Shown here piece by piece: positions 18,899 through 62,930 of a DNA stretch of 64,000 nt. Position 1 is the stretch's first letter, and every line of letters begins with the position of its first letter. The position numbers were made by a program, and so were the translations under genes. Below the pieces are notes generated by a model. It made no database searches. It saw only the letters and a list, made by a program, of their open reading frames with translations, and was not told the origin of the DNA. This DNA is from Hemiscyllium ocellatum (lineage: Eukaryota): positions 2,833,232 to 2,897,231 of the forward strand of contig NW_026867618.1 in assembly GCF_020745735.1 (NCBI RefSeq), in the 5' to 3' direction.

Positions 18899-19794
18899 TC
18901 AGATTGATTGATGAATTTGGGTAAATGGATGTTTGAGCACATTCTTCAGCTGCTGTCTGAACCTCGTCTGGGTCACAGCATAAATCACGGTGTTTGTGCA
19001 GCAACTGAGGAGCTGCAGCATGAAGGCCAAATCCTGCACAAAGGGAGCCAGATTCATTGAGTCATAGCCCAACCACCACATCCGGTTCCATATAGAATAT
19101 ACCATTAATGTTGACCATAACAGGATGAAATTGGCGGAGATAACAAACAGTAAAATAATGGATTTCTTTCGATTTTTCATTTCTGTGTCACATTGAACCA
19201 CCCCATTGGTGTGAGCCCGGAGTCTTCTGCGGGCTCTGCTGGTCACTATGATGTGTCTGACTGTTAAAGCATTGAGTAACAGGATCAGGAGAAATGGGAG
19301 AGTTGGATTGAGAATGTGGTGGATGGTCTCGACTGTGACCCAGACACGGGAGTTATAAACAGCGACTGTTGCCTCGCAAAACCAGGGGGAGTTGTTCAGT
19401 ACATACTGAGGTGTGAGCATAAAATACCAGAAAATGTTCTTCAAACAACTTAACACGGTCACTGTTCCCAGAACCACAGTTGCCGTTTTCTTGCTGCAGT
19501 GTTTACTTTTCAGCTTTTGGCAACAAATGGCCACAAATCGATCAAAGGTGAAAGTAACGGTGAACCAGACAGAACAGTCAGTGACTGCATAAAGCAGGAC
19601 GGCATGGACATTACACAGGGGAATGTACCATATGATACCAAAGTGTTCATAATAAACAATGGGAATGTGTCTCAATATCAGGTCGAGGATAATGACCAGA
19701 AGATCCGCCACTGCCATAGATCCCAGGTAACGACTGACACATGGAGACAATCCACAATCTTTCCAAAGCAGGACATAGATCGTCACTGCGTTAA
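18899..19794 (-). CDS. GPR139-like class A orphan GPCR, gene 1, exon 2 (TM1 end to C-terminus)
   Basis: Acceptor ttttccttcctcacag at 19796-19795, phase 1. Open frame VNAVTIYVL..MAVADLL..FTFDRFVAIC..LPFLLILLLN..NFILLW..SCCTNTVIY to the stop. Hydrophobic TM segments present. Confidence 0.92.
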
Positions 19795-20379
19795 CTGTGA
19801 GGAAGGAAAATAAACAAATTACATGTCTGCCTGGAGGCAAAGTATACCGTTTTATGAAGGAATCGTCGAGATTTTCAAATGTATGACTGCATTCCAAGAA
19901 TGTTTGAAATAATTGGAGCTGAAATAACAAATTTTATGTTCTGAATTACTTACAGAAATGCGAAAAAAGCATAAGAATCCCTCCTTACAAAATGCATATA
20001 GCCACATCTTTACGAAGAATTGGTTTCCAGCACATTCCCACACATTCGATCACTTGGGAGCAGGCACCACTTTCTTTCCAGCTCCTAATATGTAGGAAGA
20101 AGACACTGCCATTGCGAGGAATTCCCTCCCAGCTTATTGAAGACAAGTGGAGAATGGAAATTTCTATATTTTACTCTCAATTGTGGTCTATCCTCTGTCG
20201 TGAAGAAATGTTAACCGAGGGAAAACATATTCACGCCTTTAATTGCCTGAGGGACTTCGAAGCAGTGTGTTCTTATTCTTGGTACTTGATCTCCTCCGTC
20301 TTGATCGTATCTTTTGTTCGAAGTACTGACAACTGACAGTTCACAAATAATTTCAGTTCCAGCATGCTTCAAGAATTCT

Positions 20380-40284: not shown

Positions 40285-41680
40285 AGAAAATAGAACACAG
40301 AACATAGAAAAATACAGTGCAGTACAGGCCCTTCTGCCCTCGATGTTGCGCCGATCTAAGCCCACCTAACCTACACTAGCCCACGTTCCTCCATATGCCT
40401 ATCCAATGCCCGTTTAAATGCCCATAAAGAGGGAGAGTCCACCACTGTTACTGGCAGGGCGTTCCATGAACTTACGACTCGCTGAGTAAAGAATCCACCC
40501 CTAACATCACTCATATACCTACCACCCGTTAATTTCAAGCTATGCCCCCCCCCCCCCGTAATAGCTGACTCCATACGTGGAAAAAGGTTCTCATGGTCAG
40601 CCCTATCTAAGCCCATAATCATCTTGTACACCTCCATCATGTCACGCCTAAACCTTCTTTTCTCCAATGAAAACAGCCCCAAGTGCCTCAGTCTTTCCTC
40701 ATATGATCTTCCTACCATACCAGGCAACATCCTGGTAAACTTCCTCTGCACTGGTTCCAGTGCCTCCACATCCTTCCTATTGCATGGCGACCAAAACTGC
40801 ACACAATAATCCAGATGCGGCCGCACCAGAGTTTTATACAACTGCAACATGACCTCAGGACTCCGGACCTCAGTTCCTCTACCAATAAAAGCCAGTACGC
40901 CATATGCCTTCTTCACAGCACTATTTACCTGGGTGGCAACTTTCAGAGATCTGTGTACATGGACACCAAGATCCCTCTGCTCATCCACACTACCAAGTAT
41001 TCGACCATTAGCCCAGTAATCCATCTTCTTGTTACTCTTACCAAAGTGAATCACTTCACACTTAGCTACATTGAACTCCATTTGCTTCCTTTCTGCCCAG
41101 CTCTGCAGCTTATCTATATCCCGCTGTAAGCTGCCACATCCTTCCTCAATGTCAACAACTCCACCGACTTTCGTATCATCAGCAAACTTGCTCACCGAAC
41201 CTTCTAACCCCTCCTCCAGGTCATTTATAAAAATAACAAACAGCAATGTTCCCAAAACAGATCCTTGCGAAACACCACTGGTAACTGCACTCCAAGATGA
41301 ACCTTTACCATCAACTACTACCCTCTGTCTTCTTCCAGCCAGCCAATTCCTAATATAAACCTCCCACTCATCCTCAATGCCATACCTCCGTATTTGTTGC
41401 AGTAGCCTACCATGGGGAACCTGATCAAACGCCTTACTAAAATCCATATACACCACAACTACCGCTTTACCATCGTCCACCTCCTTAGTCAGCTTCTCAA
41501 AGAATTCAGTAAGGTTTGTGAGGCACGACCTGCCCTTCACAAAACCATGCTGACTATCCTTGATCACATTATTCCTAAGCAGATGTTCATAAATCCTATC
41601 CCTTACAATTCTCTCTAAGACTTTGCCCACAACAGAGGTAAGACTCACTGGCCTATAGTTACTAGGGTTATCCCTACTCC
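40285..41680 (-). mobile_element. 5'-truncated CR1 LINE with an uninterrupted 425-codon RT frame
   Basis: ORF 40371-41648: SQHGFVKGRSCLTNL, YMDFSKAFD, GVSQGSVLG, KFADDTK. 3' tail (agaacat)n. Confidence 0.96.
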
Positions 41681-50559: not shown

Positions 50560-51680
50560 CCTGCTAAGATTTGCTTTTGCAAAATGCAGCACCTCGCATT
50601 TATCTGAAACAAACTCCATCTGCCACTTCTCAGCTCACTGGACTATCTGGACAAGATCCTGTTGTAATCAGAGCTAACCCCCTTCGCATTCCACTCCACC
50701 TTCAATTTTCGTTTCATCTGCAAACTTACTAACTGTATATGGACCTCAGTAAGGCGGTCGACAATGTTCTCCATGGGAGACTGGTTAGCTGGATTAGGTC
50801 TGATGAAATACACTGAGAACCAGCCATTTGGACATATGACTGGCTCAAAGGTAGAAGACAGAGGGTGGTGGTGGAGGGTCGTTTTTCAGATTGTGACCTG
50901 TGACCAGTGGAGTTCCACAAGGATCAGTGATGTGTCCCCTACTATTTGTAATTTATATAATGATTTGGATGAGAGTGTAAGAGGTATCGATAGTAAGTTT
51001 GCAGATGACACCAAAATTGGAAGTGTAGTGGACAGCAAAGAAGGTTACCTCAGATTACAACAGGATCTTCATCAGATGGGCCAATTGGCTGAGAAGTGGC
51101 AGATGGAGTTTAATTCAGATAAATGCGTGGTGCTACATTTTGGGAAAACACATCTTAGCAGAACTTATACACCTAATGGTAAAGTTCTAGCGCTGTTGCT
51201 GAACAAAGAGATCTTGGAGTGCAGCTTCATTACTTCTTGAAAATGGAGTTGCAGGTAGATCAAATAGTGAAGAATGTGTCTGGTATGCTTTCCTTTATTG
51301 GTCAGAGTATTGAGCACAGAGATGGATGATCATGTTGTGGCTGTAGAGGACATTGGTTCGACCACTTTTGGAATATTGCGTGCAATTATGGTCTCCTTTC
51401 TATCGGAAAAATGTTGTGAAACTTGAAAGGATTCAAAAAAGATTTACAAAGCTGTTACTGAGGGTGGTACCAGTATGGAAAGAGCTGCCAAAGGAAGTGG
51501 TGGAGGCTAGTATAACTGCAATATTTAAAATGTGTCTGGATGGGTATACGAAGAGGAAGAGTTTGGAGGGATATGCGCTGGGTGCTGGCAGGTGGAACTA
51601 GATTGGGTGGGATATCTGGTCGACATGTACTGGTTAGACGGAATGTTCAGTTTCTGTGCTGTACATCTCTATGACTCTCT
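50560..51680 (+). mobile_element. CR1 3' part preceded by an inverted copy of its RT segment
   Basis: ORF 50764-51240 (KFADDTKIG, KWQMEFN). 50563-50731 is the reverse complement of ~50991-51159. Confidence 0.9.
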
Positions 51681-51714
51681 GACGTCCCCTTCCAGCTGAC
51701 TGTTCCTGAAGCTC

Positions 51715-52250
51715 TCATTCCGTCTCTCTTTCTCTCTTCCCGTCTCTATCGCTTTTCCACCCGTCACCTGTGGCATGGGGCATTGAATAGGGCATCAGTC
51801 AAAAGACATTAACATGAAGTGATAGTGAGTTATCAAGAAGTCTAGTGGCATTCTGTGATTCATTGCAGGTGGATTTGTACATAAATAAGTAACAATGTTC
51901 TGCTCTCTGTCACATTACCCGGGTTCTCTCTTTAAACCTCTCGCTAATCGTAGAGTTTATTACAACACTGGGACAGGACAGGAAAATAAAGTAAATCAAC
52001 ATTGACCTTCGTATGCAAACTTCGAAATGTGAATTGATGACTTTTACAATGTGTCCAATATAATGGACATTGTTCTGAGTAACTCACCTCAAACTTGGCC
52101 CACTGACACTGCACAGAGAATGTTTTACCCAAGGTCCGTCCCTTAATCCACACCCTGACTTTACCCCTTTCAGTTTTCTCCGAGCAGGTAAGCACCGGGT
52201 GTTTGATTCTGGGAGAGGACATTTTGCCTTCCAATCTTCACCTGCAAATC
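51715..52250 (+). pseudogene. Relic duplicate of the deaminase intron and exon-2 start
   Basis: Collinear with ~53118-53645. After the acceptor at 52173 it reads FLRAGKHRVFDSGRGHFAF, versus FRFAAWHQATDYGRKHFAF. Confidence 0.85.
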
Positions 52251-52470
52251 GTACCCATGGGAGCTAACCAGGACTTCTGCTTAATTACTGGGCAAGCACC
52301 ACCTAGGACGATCGACAGACATTTTCTGTTTGCCGACATGTGTGTCCCTGTATATCTTTCATTCTCTTGCCGATAATGTATGAATTGAACAAGTTGTTGT
52401 TTTCATCCTTTTCAGATTTTTTTCTGTGTTTTCCATGCAGTACGGTTAAAGGGTGCTGACAAATCTCAAA

Positions 52471-52568
52471 ATGCGGACACTCTGCCTGTTCCTGTTGGTG
52501 CTGCTCACAATCGCCATGTCAGATGCGGCTGTACTGGATAACCGTGCCTTGGCTCTCATTGTCCATTG
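52471..52568 (+). CDS. Secreted deaminase (SNAD-like), first coding exon: signal peptide
   Basis: aaaATG context. MRTLCLFLLVLLTIAMSDA-AVLDNRALALIVH, then TG|gtaagt, a phase-2 donor in frame with the acceptor at 53566. An upstream acceptor (ttccatgcag, 52440) suggests a 5' UTR exon. Confidence 0.82.
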
Positions 52569-53566
52569 GTAAGTGTCAGTGAAACAGATCTTACCTGACC
52601 ATCTCTGTAAGCTGGGGGCTTTACTAAATCTGAGGTCAAGTCAGAGCCTGGTTGCCTGGAGCAGGCTGGTAATAAATGGAGAGGAATTGGCAGGTATAGG
52701 GAATGCTCTGTAGCTGTAGGAAATAAGTCTAAAACGATTAACCAGGACTCTCATTATTCCCAGAGGAAGGGACTTCCAGGGAAACTATTACCAGATTTCC
52801 CGGGATCATATCTCTAACAGTGAAATCGATAGCACCCGCTGACCCTGAAATAAAGTAGAGAGTGAAATATATCGGAGTGAGCTTTGAAGAGAAAGTCGAA
52901 ATCCCCAACACAGGCAACATTTTACTGTTTGCTGAATCTTCACTCACCTCTCAGTTTCCCTTTGTATCCCTCTGCCTCCTTTGCTATTATTCCCATTTCC
53001 TGTCAGTCTGCAAGTCTTTTGTTCTGTTTGTCTCTGTATGCTCCAAACATTATTCCGGTTAACAATTCTTCCAGGATTCTCCCGACATCCAGCTCCCACT
53101 GATTGCACCTGTAGCTCTCATTCTCTCTCTCTCTTTCTCTCTCCCCGTCTCTATTTATTTCAAACCATCCCGTGTATCATGCGGCATCAAGTAGTGCATC
53201 AGTCAAAGTAACTTAAAATGAAGTTACTGCGTGTTATCAAGAAGGCTTGTGGCATTCTCTGATCCATTGCAGGAGGATTTGTACAAAAATAAGTAACTTA
53301 GTTCTGTTCTCTGTCAATTACCCTGATTCTCTCTTTAAACCTTTCACTGATCCCAGAATTTACTACAACACTAGGATACAAAGTGAATCAACATTGACCT
53401 TGCCATGCAATTACTTGAAAAGTGAATTGCAGGGTTTCATGTTTTCTTTAATATGATGGGCGTTGTTCCAAGTAACTCATCTCAAACTGTGCCTACTGAC
53501 ACTACAAAGAGAATGTTTTACCCAAAGGCTGTTCCTTGACACACACCCTGACTTTATCTCTTTCAG

Positions 53567-54200
53567 TTTCCGCTTTGCAGCTTGGCACCAGGCGACCGAT
53601 TATGGGAGAAAACACTTCGCCTTCCTGTTGGCTTTACCTGCTTCCCAGTGCAGAAAGAATAACAGAGATGTATTCTTGAACTTCAGGGTATTATTGCATT
53701 TTTTCATTACCGACGATGTGAACATTTTCCTTAACTACTCAGGTGGAAAATACCTCGCTGTCTTCCAGAACAGCGTCAGTCGTTGCCCAGAAAGTAAATT
53801 GCTGAACCCCGCCCAGATCAACGGGAACCGCACCGCGGCTCAGCTTTTCCAAACTCTGCTGAATAACAGAACACAGCGCAATAACCAGCCAGTGGGCTGT
53901 ATCATTCTCTACACCACCTACAGCCCATGTCTAGATCACTGTTTCAGTAACAAGGGGAATTTTGAGATCATCCCTGCCTTGCAAAGTTCCCCATTTTGGG
54001 TCATATGGACTGAACCAGACATTCACAAGTATTTTGTTTTCAGTTAAATATTTACCAATGATGCAGATCAGAACCGACACCAGGAAATCCGGGAAAAGCT
54101 GGCTGCAGTGAAGAATACCGAGTTAAATATCAGAAGGTGTGATGGAGAATACCCATTAAGGTGTAGAGAATGTTCCGCACCGGAATACTATCGATCAGAC
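53567..54200 (+). pseudogene. Secreted novel AID/APOBEC-like deaminase (SNAD1-like) catalytic exon with an in-frame TAA at 54045-54047
   Basis: HFAFLLALPASQC, CPESKLL (HxE position), GCIILYTTYSPCLDHC, KYFVFS*IFTND, then IRRC..CREC after the stop. This motif order matches SNAD-family deaminases. Confidence 0.78.
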
Positions 54201-54209
54201 TTAAAATTG

Positions 54210-55200
54210 GCGAGTCCTCTACAGATACAGGCAGGTCATTCCATGCCCTTACTACTCTCTGAATAAAGAATCTATCTCTGATATCTGGCCTATATGTATC
54301 ACCCCTCAGTTTAAACGATGCCCCCTTGTGCTAGCAATTACCATCCAGGGAAAACGGCTCTCACTGTCTGCCCTATCTATTACCCTGATTATCTTGTGTG
54401 CCTCTGTCAAGTCCCCTTTTAACCTTCTTCTCTCTAAGGAAAACAGCATTAAGTCCCTCAGCCTTCTTCATAAGAACTTCCTTCCGTACCACGCAACATC
54501 CTGACAAATATCCTCTACATCATTTCCAAAGCATCCACATCCTTCGTATCATGCAGTGAGCAGAACTGTGTGCAGTACTCCATGTGTGGCCACACCGGAG
54601 TTTTTTTACAGCTGAAACATGACCTCATGGCTCCAAAACTCAATCCCTCTATTAATAAAAGCTAACACACGTATGCCATGTCAACAACCCATCAACCTGG
54701 GCGGAAACTTTCAACGCTCTAACATGGACACTGAGATCGCTCTGCTCATTCACACGACCAAGAATCTTACAATTAACTGAGTACTCTGCATTTCTGTTAC
54801 GCCTTCTAGAGTGGATCACCTCTCACTTTGCCGCATTAACCTCCATTTGTCACCTCTCAGCCCAGCTCTGCAGCCTTCTATTTCTCACTGTAACAGACAT
54901 CATTTGGGCACTATCTGCACCTCCACCAACATTAATGGCCTCCGCAAATGTACTAACCTAGGCTTCTACATTCTCATCCACATCATTTATAAAACTGATC
55001 AGCAGCAGTGGCATCAAAACAGATCCTTGCAGTACACCACTAGTAACTGAACTCCAGGATGCAACAATTCCCATCAACCACCACCCTCTGTCTTCTAACA
55101 GCCAATTAATAATCCAAACTGCTAGATCACCCTCAATTCCATACCTCCGTATTTTCTGTGATAGCCAACTGTGGAGAATCTTATCAAACGCCTTTCTGAA
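54210..55200 (-). mobile_element. CR1 3' part inserted at the 3' end of the deaminase
   Basis: Collinear with the CR1 at 40440-41430. Confidence 0.88.
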
Positions 55201-57906: not shown

Positions 57907-59300
57907 CTACCCGTGTACATGTTTTTCAGCCTTAACTCCACTTACCTCAGTGTTCGAGTTAATTTTTGCTGGTGAGAGAGCTTTAGTACAATGATTAAGG
58001 TGGTACCATATGTGTCGTCCTTCCACTTGCATGGCGGTAGATGATGCCTTCATCACGAAGAAAGATCTCTCACTCCTCGACTCATTTATAAATCTTCGAA
58101 AAACCCGCACGTATACCCAATACCCGGGCTTACTAGGTCCTTCCTCGCTGACAGCTGTCAGTTCCCTTTGTATTTCCAGCAGGTGGTTAGTCTCATTTGT
58201 CATAGGTTGCTTCTGCGTACATTGCTTAAGTTCTGAGTTTAACTGCTCCAAGCTAGACCATTTGTATGGGGCTCTCCACCTGGGCACTGGCATAGGTCTA
58301 CCTGTGTGCATCTCAAGCGGTGTGAGCATCTCATGTAGTGTTAGATTGTAAAGCCAGCAGCAGCACATCAATCCAATTAAGGTTGGTGCTTGCGCAGATC
58401 TTGTTTAATTTGGCTGTCAATGTCCCATGAATTCTTTCCACTATACCCTGTGACTGGGGATGATATACGCATCCAAACCCCTGCTTGATTTTCAAAGAAT
58501 GCAGCATCAAATTAACTGCGTTCTGAATCAGCTCATTCTCTGAGCTGTTATCCGACGGTATACCAACCCTTGAGATATCTTCATTCGTCATAAATGTTAC
58601 TACTGTCCCAGCTCCTGCTTTCAACCTTATTTCCACTGTTCCAGTTGATTTCACTCTCCCCCCCATCTGTATCATGTTGCCACTACAAATTGCCTGGTAC
58701 TGTATCCAATTGCTCATTACCATATTGATCATCTTCCTCCACTGTCACTGGCATGCTCCGCTGGATTGTTACCTTGGCTTCCTTTGGATTCCCTGTCAAG
58801 TTGCAGCACACTAGTGTTTTTATATAGCTGCCATCCCTGGGTTCCCAAAGTCCTGTCGTGAGCATATACATTCCCTAATTGTTTCTCCATGCCTGGCCAC
58901 AGTGCCAATATCTTTAGATTGATATCCCTTATTTACCAGTAAGGCTACATGCAGTGCAGAGCCTGGGACACTCTATCAGTTTGGCAATAATGGATTTCTC
59001 TGTATTTGCAGGATCACTTCCTGCTTCCCTAATAACATTGCTTCACTTCTCCCAATTTGTGGAGCACTGTCTTTCTCCTGCCACTGTCTTTCTAACACCT
59101 CATCCTGAGATTCATCAAATATCTCTGTGTCGTCCAGCTCCGACGTAGGTGGTCTTGCTTTGGTCAACATCGTAAACACCTCTGCTTCCCACATCACGCA
59201 ATGTCTTGAATATCACTTGCTGTATCCACTATCCAATAAACATGAACATCTTTAACTTCGGGCATCATTAATTGTACATTGGCCTTTTCTACGACCGAGT
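57907..59300 (-). pseudogene. pol: ERV pol remnant (integrase and upstream fragments)
   Basis: GIPSDN, YHPQSQGIVERIHGTLTAKLNKIC, LTPLEMHTGRPMP and KPGYWVYVR. Many frameshifts and deletions. Confidence 0.88.
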
Positions 59301-62049: not shown

Positions 62050-62930
62050 TTAGTCTGGTGGCAATTACATTCTTATCTCGGAGCAAGTGTGGCCTTTCAA
62101 CATGTTCCACTCGCTATCTCGTAGCAATGGCAGTGTCTGATCTACTGTTCATTATTTTTGATATCATATTTGTTCAGTTTGTTTACTATTATTATCCGCC
62201 GTCTTTTCTGGACATCACTCCTGTTTGTAGTGTTCTCCACGTTCTGAGCTGCTTTACTGTTGATTGCTCTGTCTCGTTCACGGCTGCTTTTACATTTGAT
62301 TGATTTGTAGCAATTTGTATTCATCAGATGAAATCTCAGTATTGCACAGCGAAAACAGCAATGAGAGCTCTAGCAACAATCTGCATTTCCTTCTCTTTAA
62401 AGAATATTCCAATTTATTTCATATTTGAATCCGGATGGATAATTAATAACATTCCATGGTACTGTTACATAAAAGACAGTTATTATGACAATGTACATTG
62501 GGTGAGTTTTACATACATTGAAATGTTTTTCACACCATTTCTCCCATTTATTTTTATTGCCTTCCTCAACATTCTGACCGTCAGACACACCTTTGAGGCA
62601 GTTAAGGCACGTAAAGGACTGAGGGGTCAGAGAAAAACAGAGATTGACCCAGAGATAGATAGCAGAAAGAACTCTGTGATTTTACTCTATGCCATATCGG
62701 CCGATTTTATCCTTCTCTGGTTTGTGTATATTTTGTATATGTTCAATTTTGGTTATTACATGGATGATTTTGATCTCTTTGAACAAGTTGCATATATGCT
62801 GCAGAACCTAAGTTGCTGCACAAATGCACTTATTTATGTGATGACGCAGAAAAACTTTAGAGACCAGTTAAAGTATGCCGTGAAATATCCAGTTATAAAA
62901 ACAATTCAATTGATGAATAAATCCAAGTGA
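62050..62930 (+). pseudogene. GPR139-like GPCR gene 2, exon 2, with a nonsense codon in the DRF motif
   Basis: Acceptor ttctttcatcttacag at 62049. Reads VSLVAITFLSRSKCGLS..MAVSDLL..FTFD*FVAIC (TGA at 62301-62303), and the same frame continues to SCCTNALIY and the stop at 62930. Confidence 0.9.

Follow-up and report, generated by a model that had tools for sequence, protein, structure and literature searches.

A probable SNAD1 pseudogene in the shark Hemiscyllium ocellatum and the Cys-x-Glu motif of its family

The window analysed here, a stretch of 64,000 nucleotides of Hemiscyllium ocellatum DNA, contains a copy of SNAD1, a family of AID/APOBEC-like deaminases, at 52471-54267 on the forward strand. 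We consider it very probable (about 0.88) that this is a real two-exon SNAD1 gene copy that died through a nonsense codon and a separate 2-bp deletion. Direct reading of the sequence confirmed that the copy has two exons and one phase-2 intron, arranged as follows:

52230..52470, + strand: conserved promoter-proximal region and 5'UTR (alignment with the regions upstream of two Chiloscyllium punctatum SNAD1 genes)
52471..52568, + strand: exon 1, 98 nt, with the start codon, the signal peptide and the first two bases of the junction codon
52569..53566, + strand: phase-2 intron, GTAAGT to a pyrimidine tract plus CAG (intron of the C. punctatum gene L001 at the same position)
53567..54044, + strand: still-open part of exon 2, the deaminase core from strand 1 to strand 4 (Pfam SNAD1, E 4.4e-12)
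54045..54047, + strand: first lesion, a nonsense change of AAA (Lys) to TAA (DNA and protein alignments; AAA in all three C. punctatum copies)
54048..54204, + strand: formerly coding rest of exon 2, with helix 4, strands 5-7 and the Cys cluster (DNA alignment)
54205..54267, + strand: 3'UTR, with a poly(A) signal AATAAA at 54262-67 (same AATAAA context downstream of the L001 stop)

Exon 1 starts with the ATG at 52471, encodes MRTLCLFLLVLLTIAMSDAAVLDNRALALIVH plus TG and ends at 52568. Its signal peptide, which the first-pass annotation had recognised, consists of MR, a 13-residue hydrophobic core (TLCLFLLVLLTIA, mean Kyte-Doolittle hydropathy 2.9) and SDA followed by A, and is likely cleaved after SDA. 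Exon 1 is near-identical to that of intact homologues, so the N-terminal signal peptide expected of a SNAD1 protein is present. The promoter-proximal region and exon 1 together have 94% mean column identity to two C. punctatum genes, L001 and L002. The splice donor is G/GTAAGT at 52569 (slash, exon boundary); at the 3' end of the intron a pyrimidine tract is followed by the acceptor CAG at 53564-66, and exon 2 begins at 53567. L001, which is the annotated gene for the intact relative P0005, also has an exon 1 of 98 nt, the same donor as the window (CG/GTAAGT in L001) and the same acceptor and phase. The window intron aligns to that of L001 inside a 2.4-kb match of 89% identity, and collinearity continues into about 7.5 kb of flanking sequence downstream, at about 87.5%. 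Because the structure is identical to that of an annotated gene, the two-exon reading, in which 52471-52568 is spliced in phase 2 to 53567 as first proposed, is not due to chance. The junction codon is TG/T (Cys) in the window and CG/T (Arg) in L002, so that the window's junction Cys is a C-to-T change at a CpG and not ancestral.

All the motifs previously listed for the second exon were found there: CPE at 53784-53792, SPCLDHC at 53922-53942 (PCLDHC at 53925-42), three N-glycosylation sequons (NYS at 53733, NRT at 53826 and NRT at 53865) and the RRC..CxxC cluster. This cluster, read as RRC..C-RE-C, is in the same frame but 3' of the in-frame TAA at 54045-47. The copy therefore retains the zinc/catalytic motif of SNAD1, [C/H]xE at helix 2 with PCxnC after strand 3. 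To the Pfam SNAD1 profile (PF18744), the open part of exon 2 scored 46.8 bits (E 4.4e-12; profile positions 17-145 of 213), above the curated cut-off of 25 bits, which upholds the proposed SNAD-like, AID/APOBEC-type family. Weaker Pfam matches, to SNAD2 and NAD1, covered the PCxxC region. A protein search returned seven SNAD1-domain proteins of H. ocellatum, C. punctatum and Stegostoma tigrinum at 61-82% identity, and the open part of exon 2 is 75-82% identical to the bamboo and epaulette shark proteins. When the three coding pieces were compared with the 64-kb window by tblastn, no second coding copy was detected.

The stop at 54045-47 had been noticed in the first-pass annotation, which missed a second lesion. 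The stop replaces the Lys within FVFS-K-IF. In the second lesion, two bases of the TGC codon for the last conserved Cys have been lost between 54189 and 54190; the window reads TACT--ATCGA where L001 and L002 have TACTGCATCGA, and the frame was checked by hand. Neither the nonsense change nor the frameshift is present in the DNA alignment of the three C. punctatum copies. Owing to the deletion, the ancestral stop (TAA at 54202-04) is no longer read in frame. What follows APEY, 21 residues translated from 3'UTR in the wrong frame, runs to a TAA inside the AATAAA at 54262-67. Because the frame is shifted past the ancestral stop, the apparent C-terminal tail is 3'UTR read-through. We also considered that the in-frame stop lies inside an unannotated intron; this was rejected since the same stretch is coding (YFVFSK) in all annotated relatives.

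The TAA and the frameshift leave no intact SNAD1 reading frame. SNAD1 proteins have a four-Cys cluster at strands 5-7 (C, CxxC, C), of which three Cys remain in the window copy, all 3' of the stop, and the 2-bp deletion has removed the fourth. On these grounds the copy was filed as a SNAD1 pseudogene. Compared with SNAD1 (PF18744), it differs by the premature stop, the frameshift, the lost fourth cluster Cys and an Arg>Cys change at the splice junction, and is a dead member of the family and not a functional variant. The two lesions, both read from a single assembly, are the main evidence for this assignment.

Codon analyses covered the window and the three C. punctatum copies. Nei-Gojobori dN/dS was 1.05 for the window versus L001 and 1.01 versus L002, whereas the C. 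punctatum copies gave values of 0.56-0.74 when compared with each other. This excess is suggestive of a pseudogene but not decisive, because dN/dS is high throughout this fast-evolving family. The changes unique to the window copy comprise 16 non-synonymous and 2 synonymous ones, and the radical substitutions include G>W, G>V, R>W, D>V and C>F. Among them are the Arg>Cys at the splice junction and a Cys>Phe where 7/7 close homologues have Cys. These data also bear on the reading that the gene is functional and that the stop and the 2-bp deletion are assembly or sequencing errors, or a rare or segregating null allele. Such a gene would account for the intact promoter, splice sites, signal peptide and zinc motif, and the copy is only about 11-13% diverged from the intact C. 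punctatum copies. We nevertheless regard it as improbable, given two independent lesions within 150 bp, the radical window-only changes at conserved positions (Arg>Cys at the junction, Gly>Trp, Cys>Phe) and the 16 to 2 ratio of unique non-synonymous to synonymous changes.

To see what the lesions remove, an AlphaFold2 model of P0005 was built with a 30-sequence alignment (mean pLDDT 81.6, pTM 0.84). In its first half the model has a strand (51-57), two short helices, a strand (95-98), the CPE opening a helix (107-112) and a helix (123-138). The second half has a strand (142-151), P153-C154...C158, a strand (186-193), a helix (201-215) and two strands (219-225 and 231-234). The short helices, 58-62 and 84-88, lie between strands 51-57 and 95-98 as in SNAD1, and the segment matching them is kept in the window, though diverged. 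A Foldseek search of the PDB with the model gave 50 top matches that were all APOBEC3, AID or APOBEC1 chains, with weak scores (E at least 3e-3, TM about 0.3). Among the Swiss-Prot AlphaFold models, APOBEC4, APOBEC3C and AID were matched. VIA-align gave Z 7.8 over 134-145 residues to APOBEC3B and APOBEC3A, a value to be read with caution as Z under 8 can reflect a common arrangement, with RibD and dCMP deaminases close behind. For this reason the fold assignment rests jointly on the Pfam match, the motifs and the consistent identity of the structural matches. The family profile searched against PDB sequences gave no deaminase, only chance matches, and SNAD1 has no solved relative detectable by sequence. 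The predicted structure is deaminase-like and of the helix-4 type, as in AID/APOBEC and TadA, in keeping with the fold expected from the earlier annotation. Mapped onto the model, the stop of the window copy falls just after strand 4, and helix 4, strand 5 and the C-terminal Cys hairpin are lost.

Intact SNAD1 members are proteins of about 245 residues, with the signal peptide in exon 1 and a helix-4-type deaminase domain in exon 2. Their zinc site would combine the Cys-x-Glu that opens helix 2 with the P-C-x3-C that follows strand 3, and further on lies a C-terminal hairpin with four Cys in which disulfides are probable. The motif, the modelled fold and plasma proteomics make it probable that intact paralogues are released into plasma as zinc-dependent deaminases, which may use a three-Cys zinc site with the conserved Glu as proton shuttle. 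The window copy keeps the promoter region, the splice sites, the signal peptide and the zinc motif, but a full domain would be impossible. The nonsense codon would end the product after strand 4, with helix 4, strand 5 and the Cys cluster gone, and the 2-bp deletion abolishes the last Cys codon and the original stop. If transcribed, the message would be expected to evade nonsense-mediated decay, as its stop lies in the final exon, and to yield a 192-residue fragment that lacks one strand of the core as well as the disulfide hairpin. Secretion of such a truncated product is conceivable, but most likely nothing useful results from the copy.

Escape from nonsense-mediated decay, together with the intact upstream parts of the gene, could be taken to mean that the 192-residue product, comprising the signal peptide, strands 1-4 and the zinc motif, has taken on a new function that does not involve catalysis, such as that of a decoy or binding protein. 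We think this very unlikely. The model topology argues that stable folding is unlikely without helix 4, the core-sheet strand 5 and the disulfide hairpin; the region 3' of the stop has decayed further by frameshift, as expected for a dead gene; and this truncated form is not conserved in any other truncated copy.

Of the retrieved SNAD1 proteins, 43 include the motif region, and all 43 have Cys-x-Glu and the full CxE..PCx3C pattern. The seven close homologues all have SRCPE, and the three C. punctatum genes have the same CPE codons as the window copy, TGC CCA GAA. When 1.84 billion representatives were searched exhaustively with HMMER, 16 proteins were obtained at E <= 1e-3, and every SNAD1 among them has C-[STPA]-E followed by PCx3C 40-55 residues later. 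In the 30-sequence alignment, C106, E108, G143, C144, C154, C158, C224 and C232 (P0005 numbering) are invariant. The motif set covers sharks of five orders, sturgeons, gar, bowfin, arowana, a sucker and a newt. The sharks are Stegostoma, Heterodontus, Mustelus, Scyliorhinus, Pristiophorus and Heptranchias; the ray-finned fishes are Acipenser, Huso, Lepisosteus, Amia, Scleropages and Xyrauchen; and the amphibian is Pleurodeles. Scleropages and Xyrauchen are the only teleosts in the set, with carp and zebrafish outside it, and a word-indexed search seeded with the Xyrauchen protein gave no further teleost SNAD1s. Since the Cys columns are invariant among the 30 SNAD1s, the first-ligand Cys is ancestral to SNAD1 and under constraint, and neither specific to one paralogue nor a product of decay.

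The first-pass annotation had started from the premise that SNADs use HxE, and had taken the Cys as a mark of a special shark paralogue in which Cys had replaced His as the first ligand, whether to give a new three-Cys variant or through decay after gene death. It is true that the window copy carries CPE and is broken. However, when the intact relatives were checked for HxE, the opposite was found: CPE or CxE is present in all of them, in cartilaginous fishes, ray-finned fishes and the amphibian, and TGC CCA GAA is shared by the three C. punctatum genes. The premise is wrong for SNAD1, the copy-specific novelty falls with it, and we give a His-to-Cys change in this paralogue almost no credence.

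Two kinds of known enzyme invite comparison. As in the tetrameric free-cytidine (CDD-like) deaminases, the first zinc ligand of SNAD1 is Cys, so a three-Cys zinc site is predicted. In CDD-like enzymes, strands 4 and 5 form a direct hairpin, as described by Krishnan et al. (PMC5889660). In contrast to this description, the two strands (186-193 and 219-225) are separated by helix 201-215 in the SNAD1 model. The direct hairpin is absent from the P0005 model, which is predicted to be of the helix-4 type and not CDD-like, and the suggested link of CxE to free-cytidine deaminases does not hold on this model. No sequence match to the CDD-like family was obtained in the Pfam search of exon 2 or with the family profile against PDB sequences. 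The classical AID/APOBEC proteins (APOBEC3A/B/G/H, AID, APOBEC1 and APOBEC4) are the best structural matches of modelled P0005, with which they share the order of strands and helices and zinc motifs at the same topological places, at 7-15% sequence identity. They differ in being intracellular and in having His-x-Glu. The spacing between the two motifs is about 25-30 residues in the classical members and 44 here, and helices 5 and 6 form their C-terminus where SNAD1 has a predicted disulfide hairpin. In the classical members, the His of the active site stacks on the target base. It is possible, though doubtful, that the SNAD1 clade as a whole forms a branch of the AID/APOBEC superfamily with a three-Cys zinc site. 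If so, given the role of the His, the invariant Cys could mean that the substrate is held differently or is a different one.

SNAD1-4 were defined by Krishnan et al. in 2018, when SNAD1 was traced back only to bony vertebrates (PMC5889660). Two SNAD1 proteins were then detected by mass spectrometry in nurse shark plasma, as reported in 2022 (PMC9207270), and public annotations of related sharks predict SNAD1 genes as uncharacterised proteins. Shark SNAD1 was therefore already known, and the window locus adds one dead copy. In a 2024 review-type study of fish SNAD1, the protein is described with two Cys, one His and an HxE motif (PMC11004436). A His ligand is thus given in two papers, for active AID/APOBEC-like deaminases generally and for SNAD1 itself (PMC11004436). 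The text of PMC5889660, PMC9207270 and PMC11004436 does not mention a Cys first ligand, which the figures may show. The sequences retrieved here disagree with the His description of SNAD1. This would be a modest correction rather than a discovery, because the figures may show the Cys and because carp and zebrafish are outside our set.

Beside the gene, blastn revealed a further piece of SNAD1 sequence:

51696..52232, + strand: decayed relic of another SNAD1 copy, consisting of the 3' half of the intron and the first ~58 nt of exon 2 (blastn)

The relic is non-coding and abuts the promoter region of the window gene. It has 76% identity to the intron/exon 2 boundary of L001 by blastn, and was also compared by alignment with the intron of the window gene itself. 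In L001 and L002, the place upstream of 52230 is occupied by a CT-rich repeat instead, with faint similarity only in the last ~60 nt. The relic is probably a leftover of unequal duplication. Elsewhere in the window, the ORFs at 18902-19930 (-) and 62328-62927 (+) encode rhodopsin-family receptors (Pfam 7tm_1, E 1.7e-16 and 4.4e-7), the former being a full-length single-exon candidate GPCR gene. Retroelement remains lie at 40374-41648 (-), 50764-51237 (+) and 57910-58371 (-), and comprise two reverse-transcriptase ORFs and one ORF with an MLV-integrase C-terminal domain.

Several observations concern other members of the family. In H. ocellatum, three places encode the protein P0002. In C. punctatum, P0004 and P0003 look damaged: P0004 has PCLDHR (the second Cys of PCxxxC changed to Arg) and an early end at 204 aa, and P0003 carries SLC instead of SPC. 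The SNAD1-like proteins P0019 and P0043 of Xyrauchen texanus, a cypriniform sucker, are 76% identical over 250 residues to P0044 of the sturgeon Acipenser ruthenus. So high an identity between such distant fishes is unexpected in a fast-evolving family, and one of the assemblies may hold contaminating or misassigned sequence. The SNAD1s of Amia, Xyrauchen, Acipenser and Lepisosteus (P0013, P0019 and P0043-P0045) have an extra Cys-rich C-terminal tail of ~110 residues with many CxxC repeats, which is absent from the shark proteins.

Together, these results suggest that the SNAD1 family of bamboo-type sharks undergoes birth-and-death turnover by duplication and loss, and the window locus illustrates this turnover in a rapidly duplicating immune-type family. 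Bench work on SNAD1 would be better served by an intact paralogue than by the window copy. A by-product at the level of the family is that every SNAD1 sampled, from shark to newt, has Cys-x-Glu, compared with the His of the literature. For the first biochemistry or structure of SNAD1, including active-site mutants, zinc stoichiometry and substrate modelling, a three-Cys site may therefore serve as the starting point.
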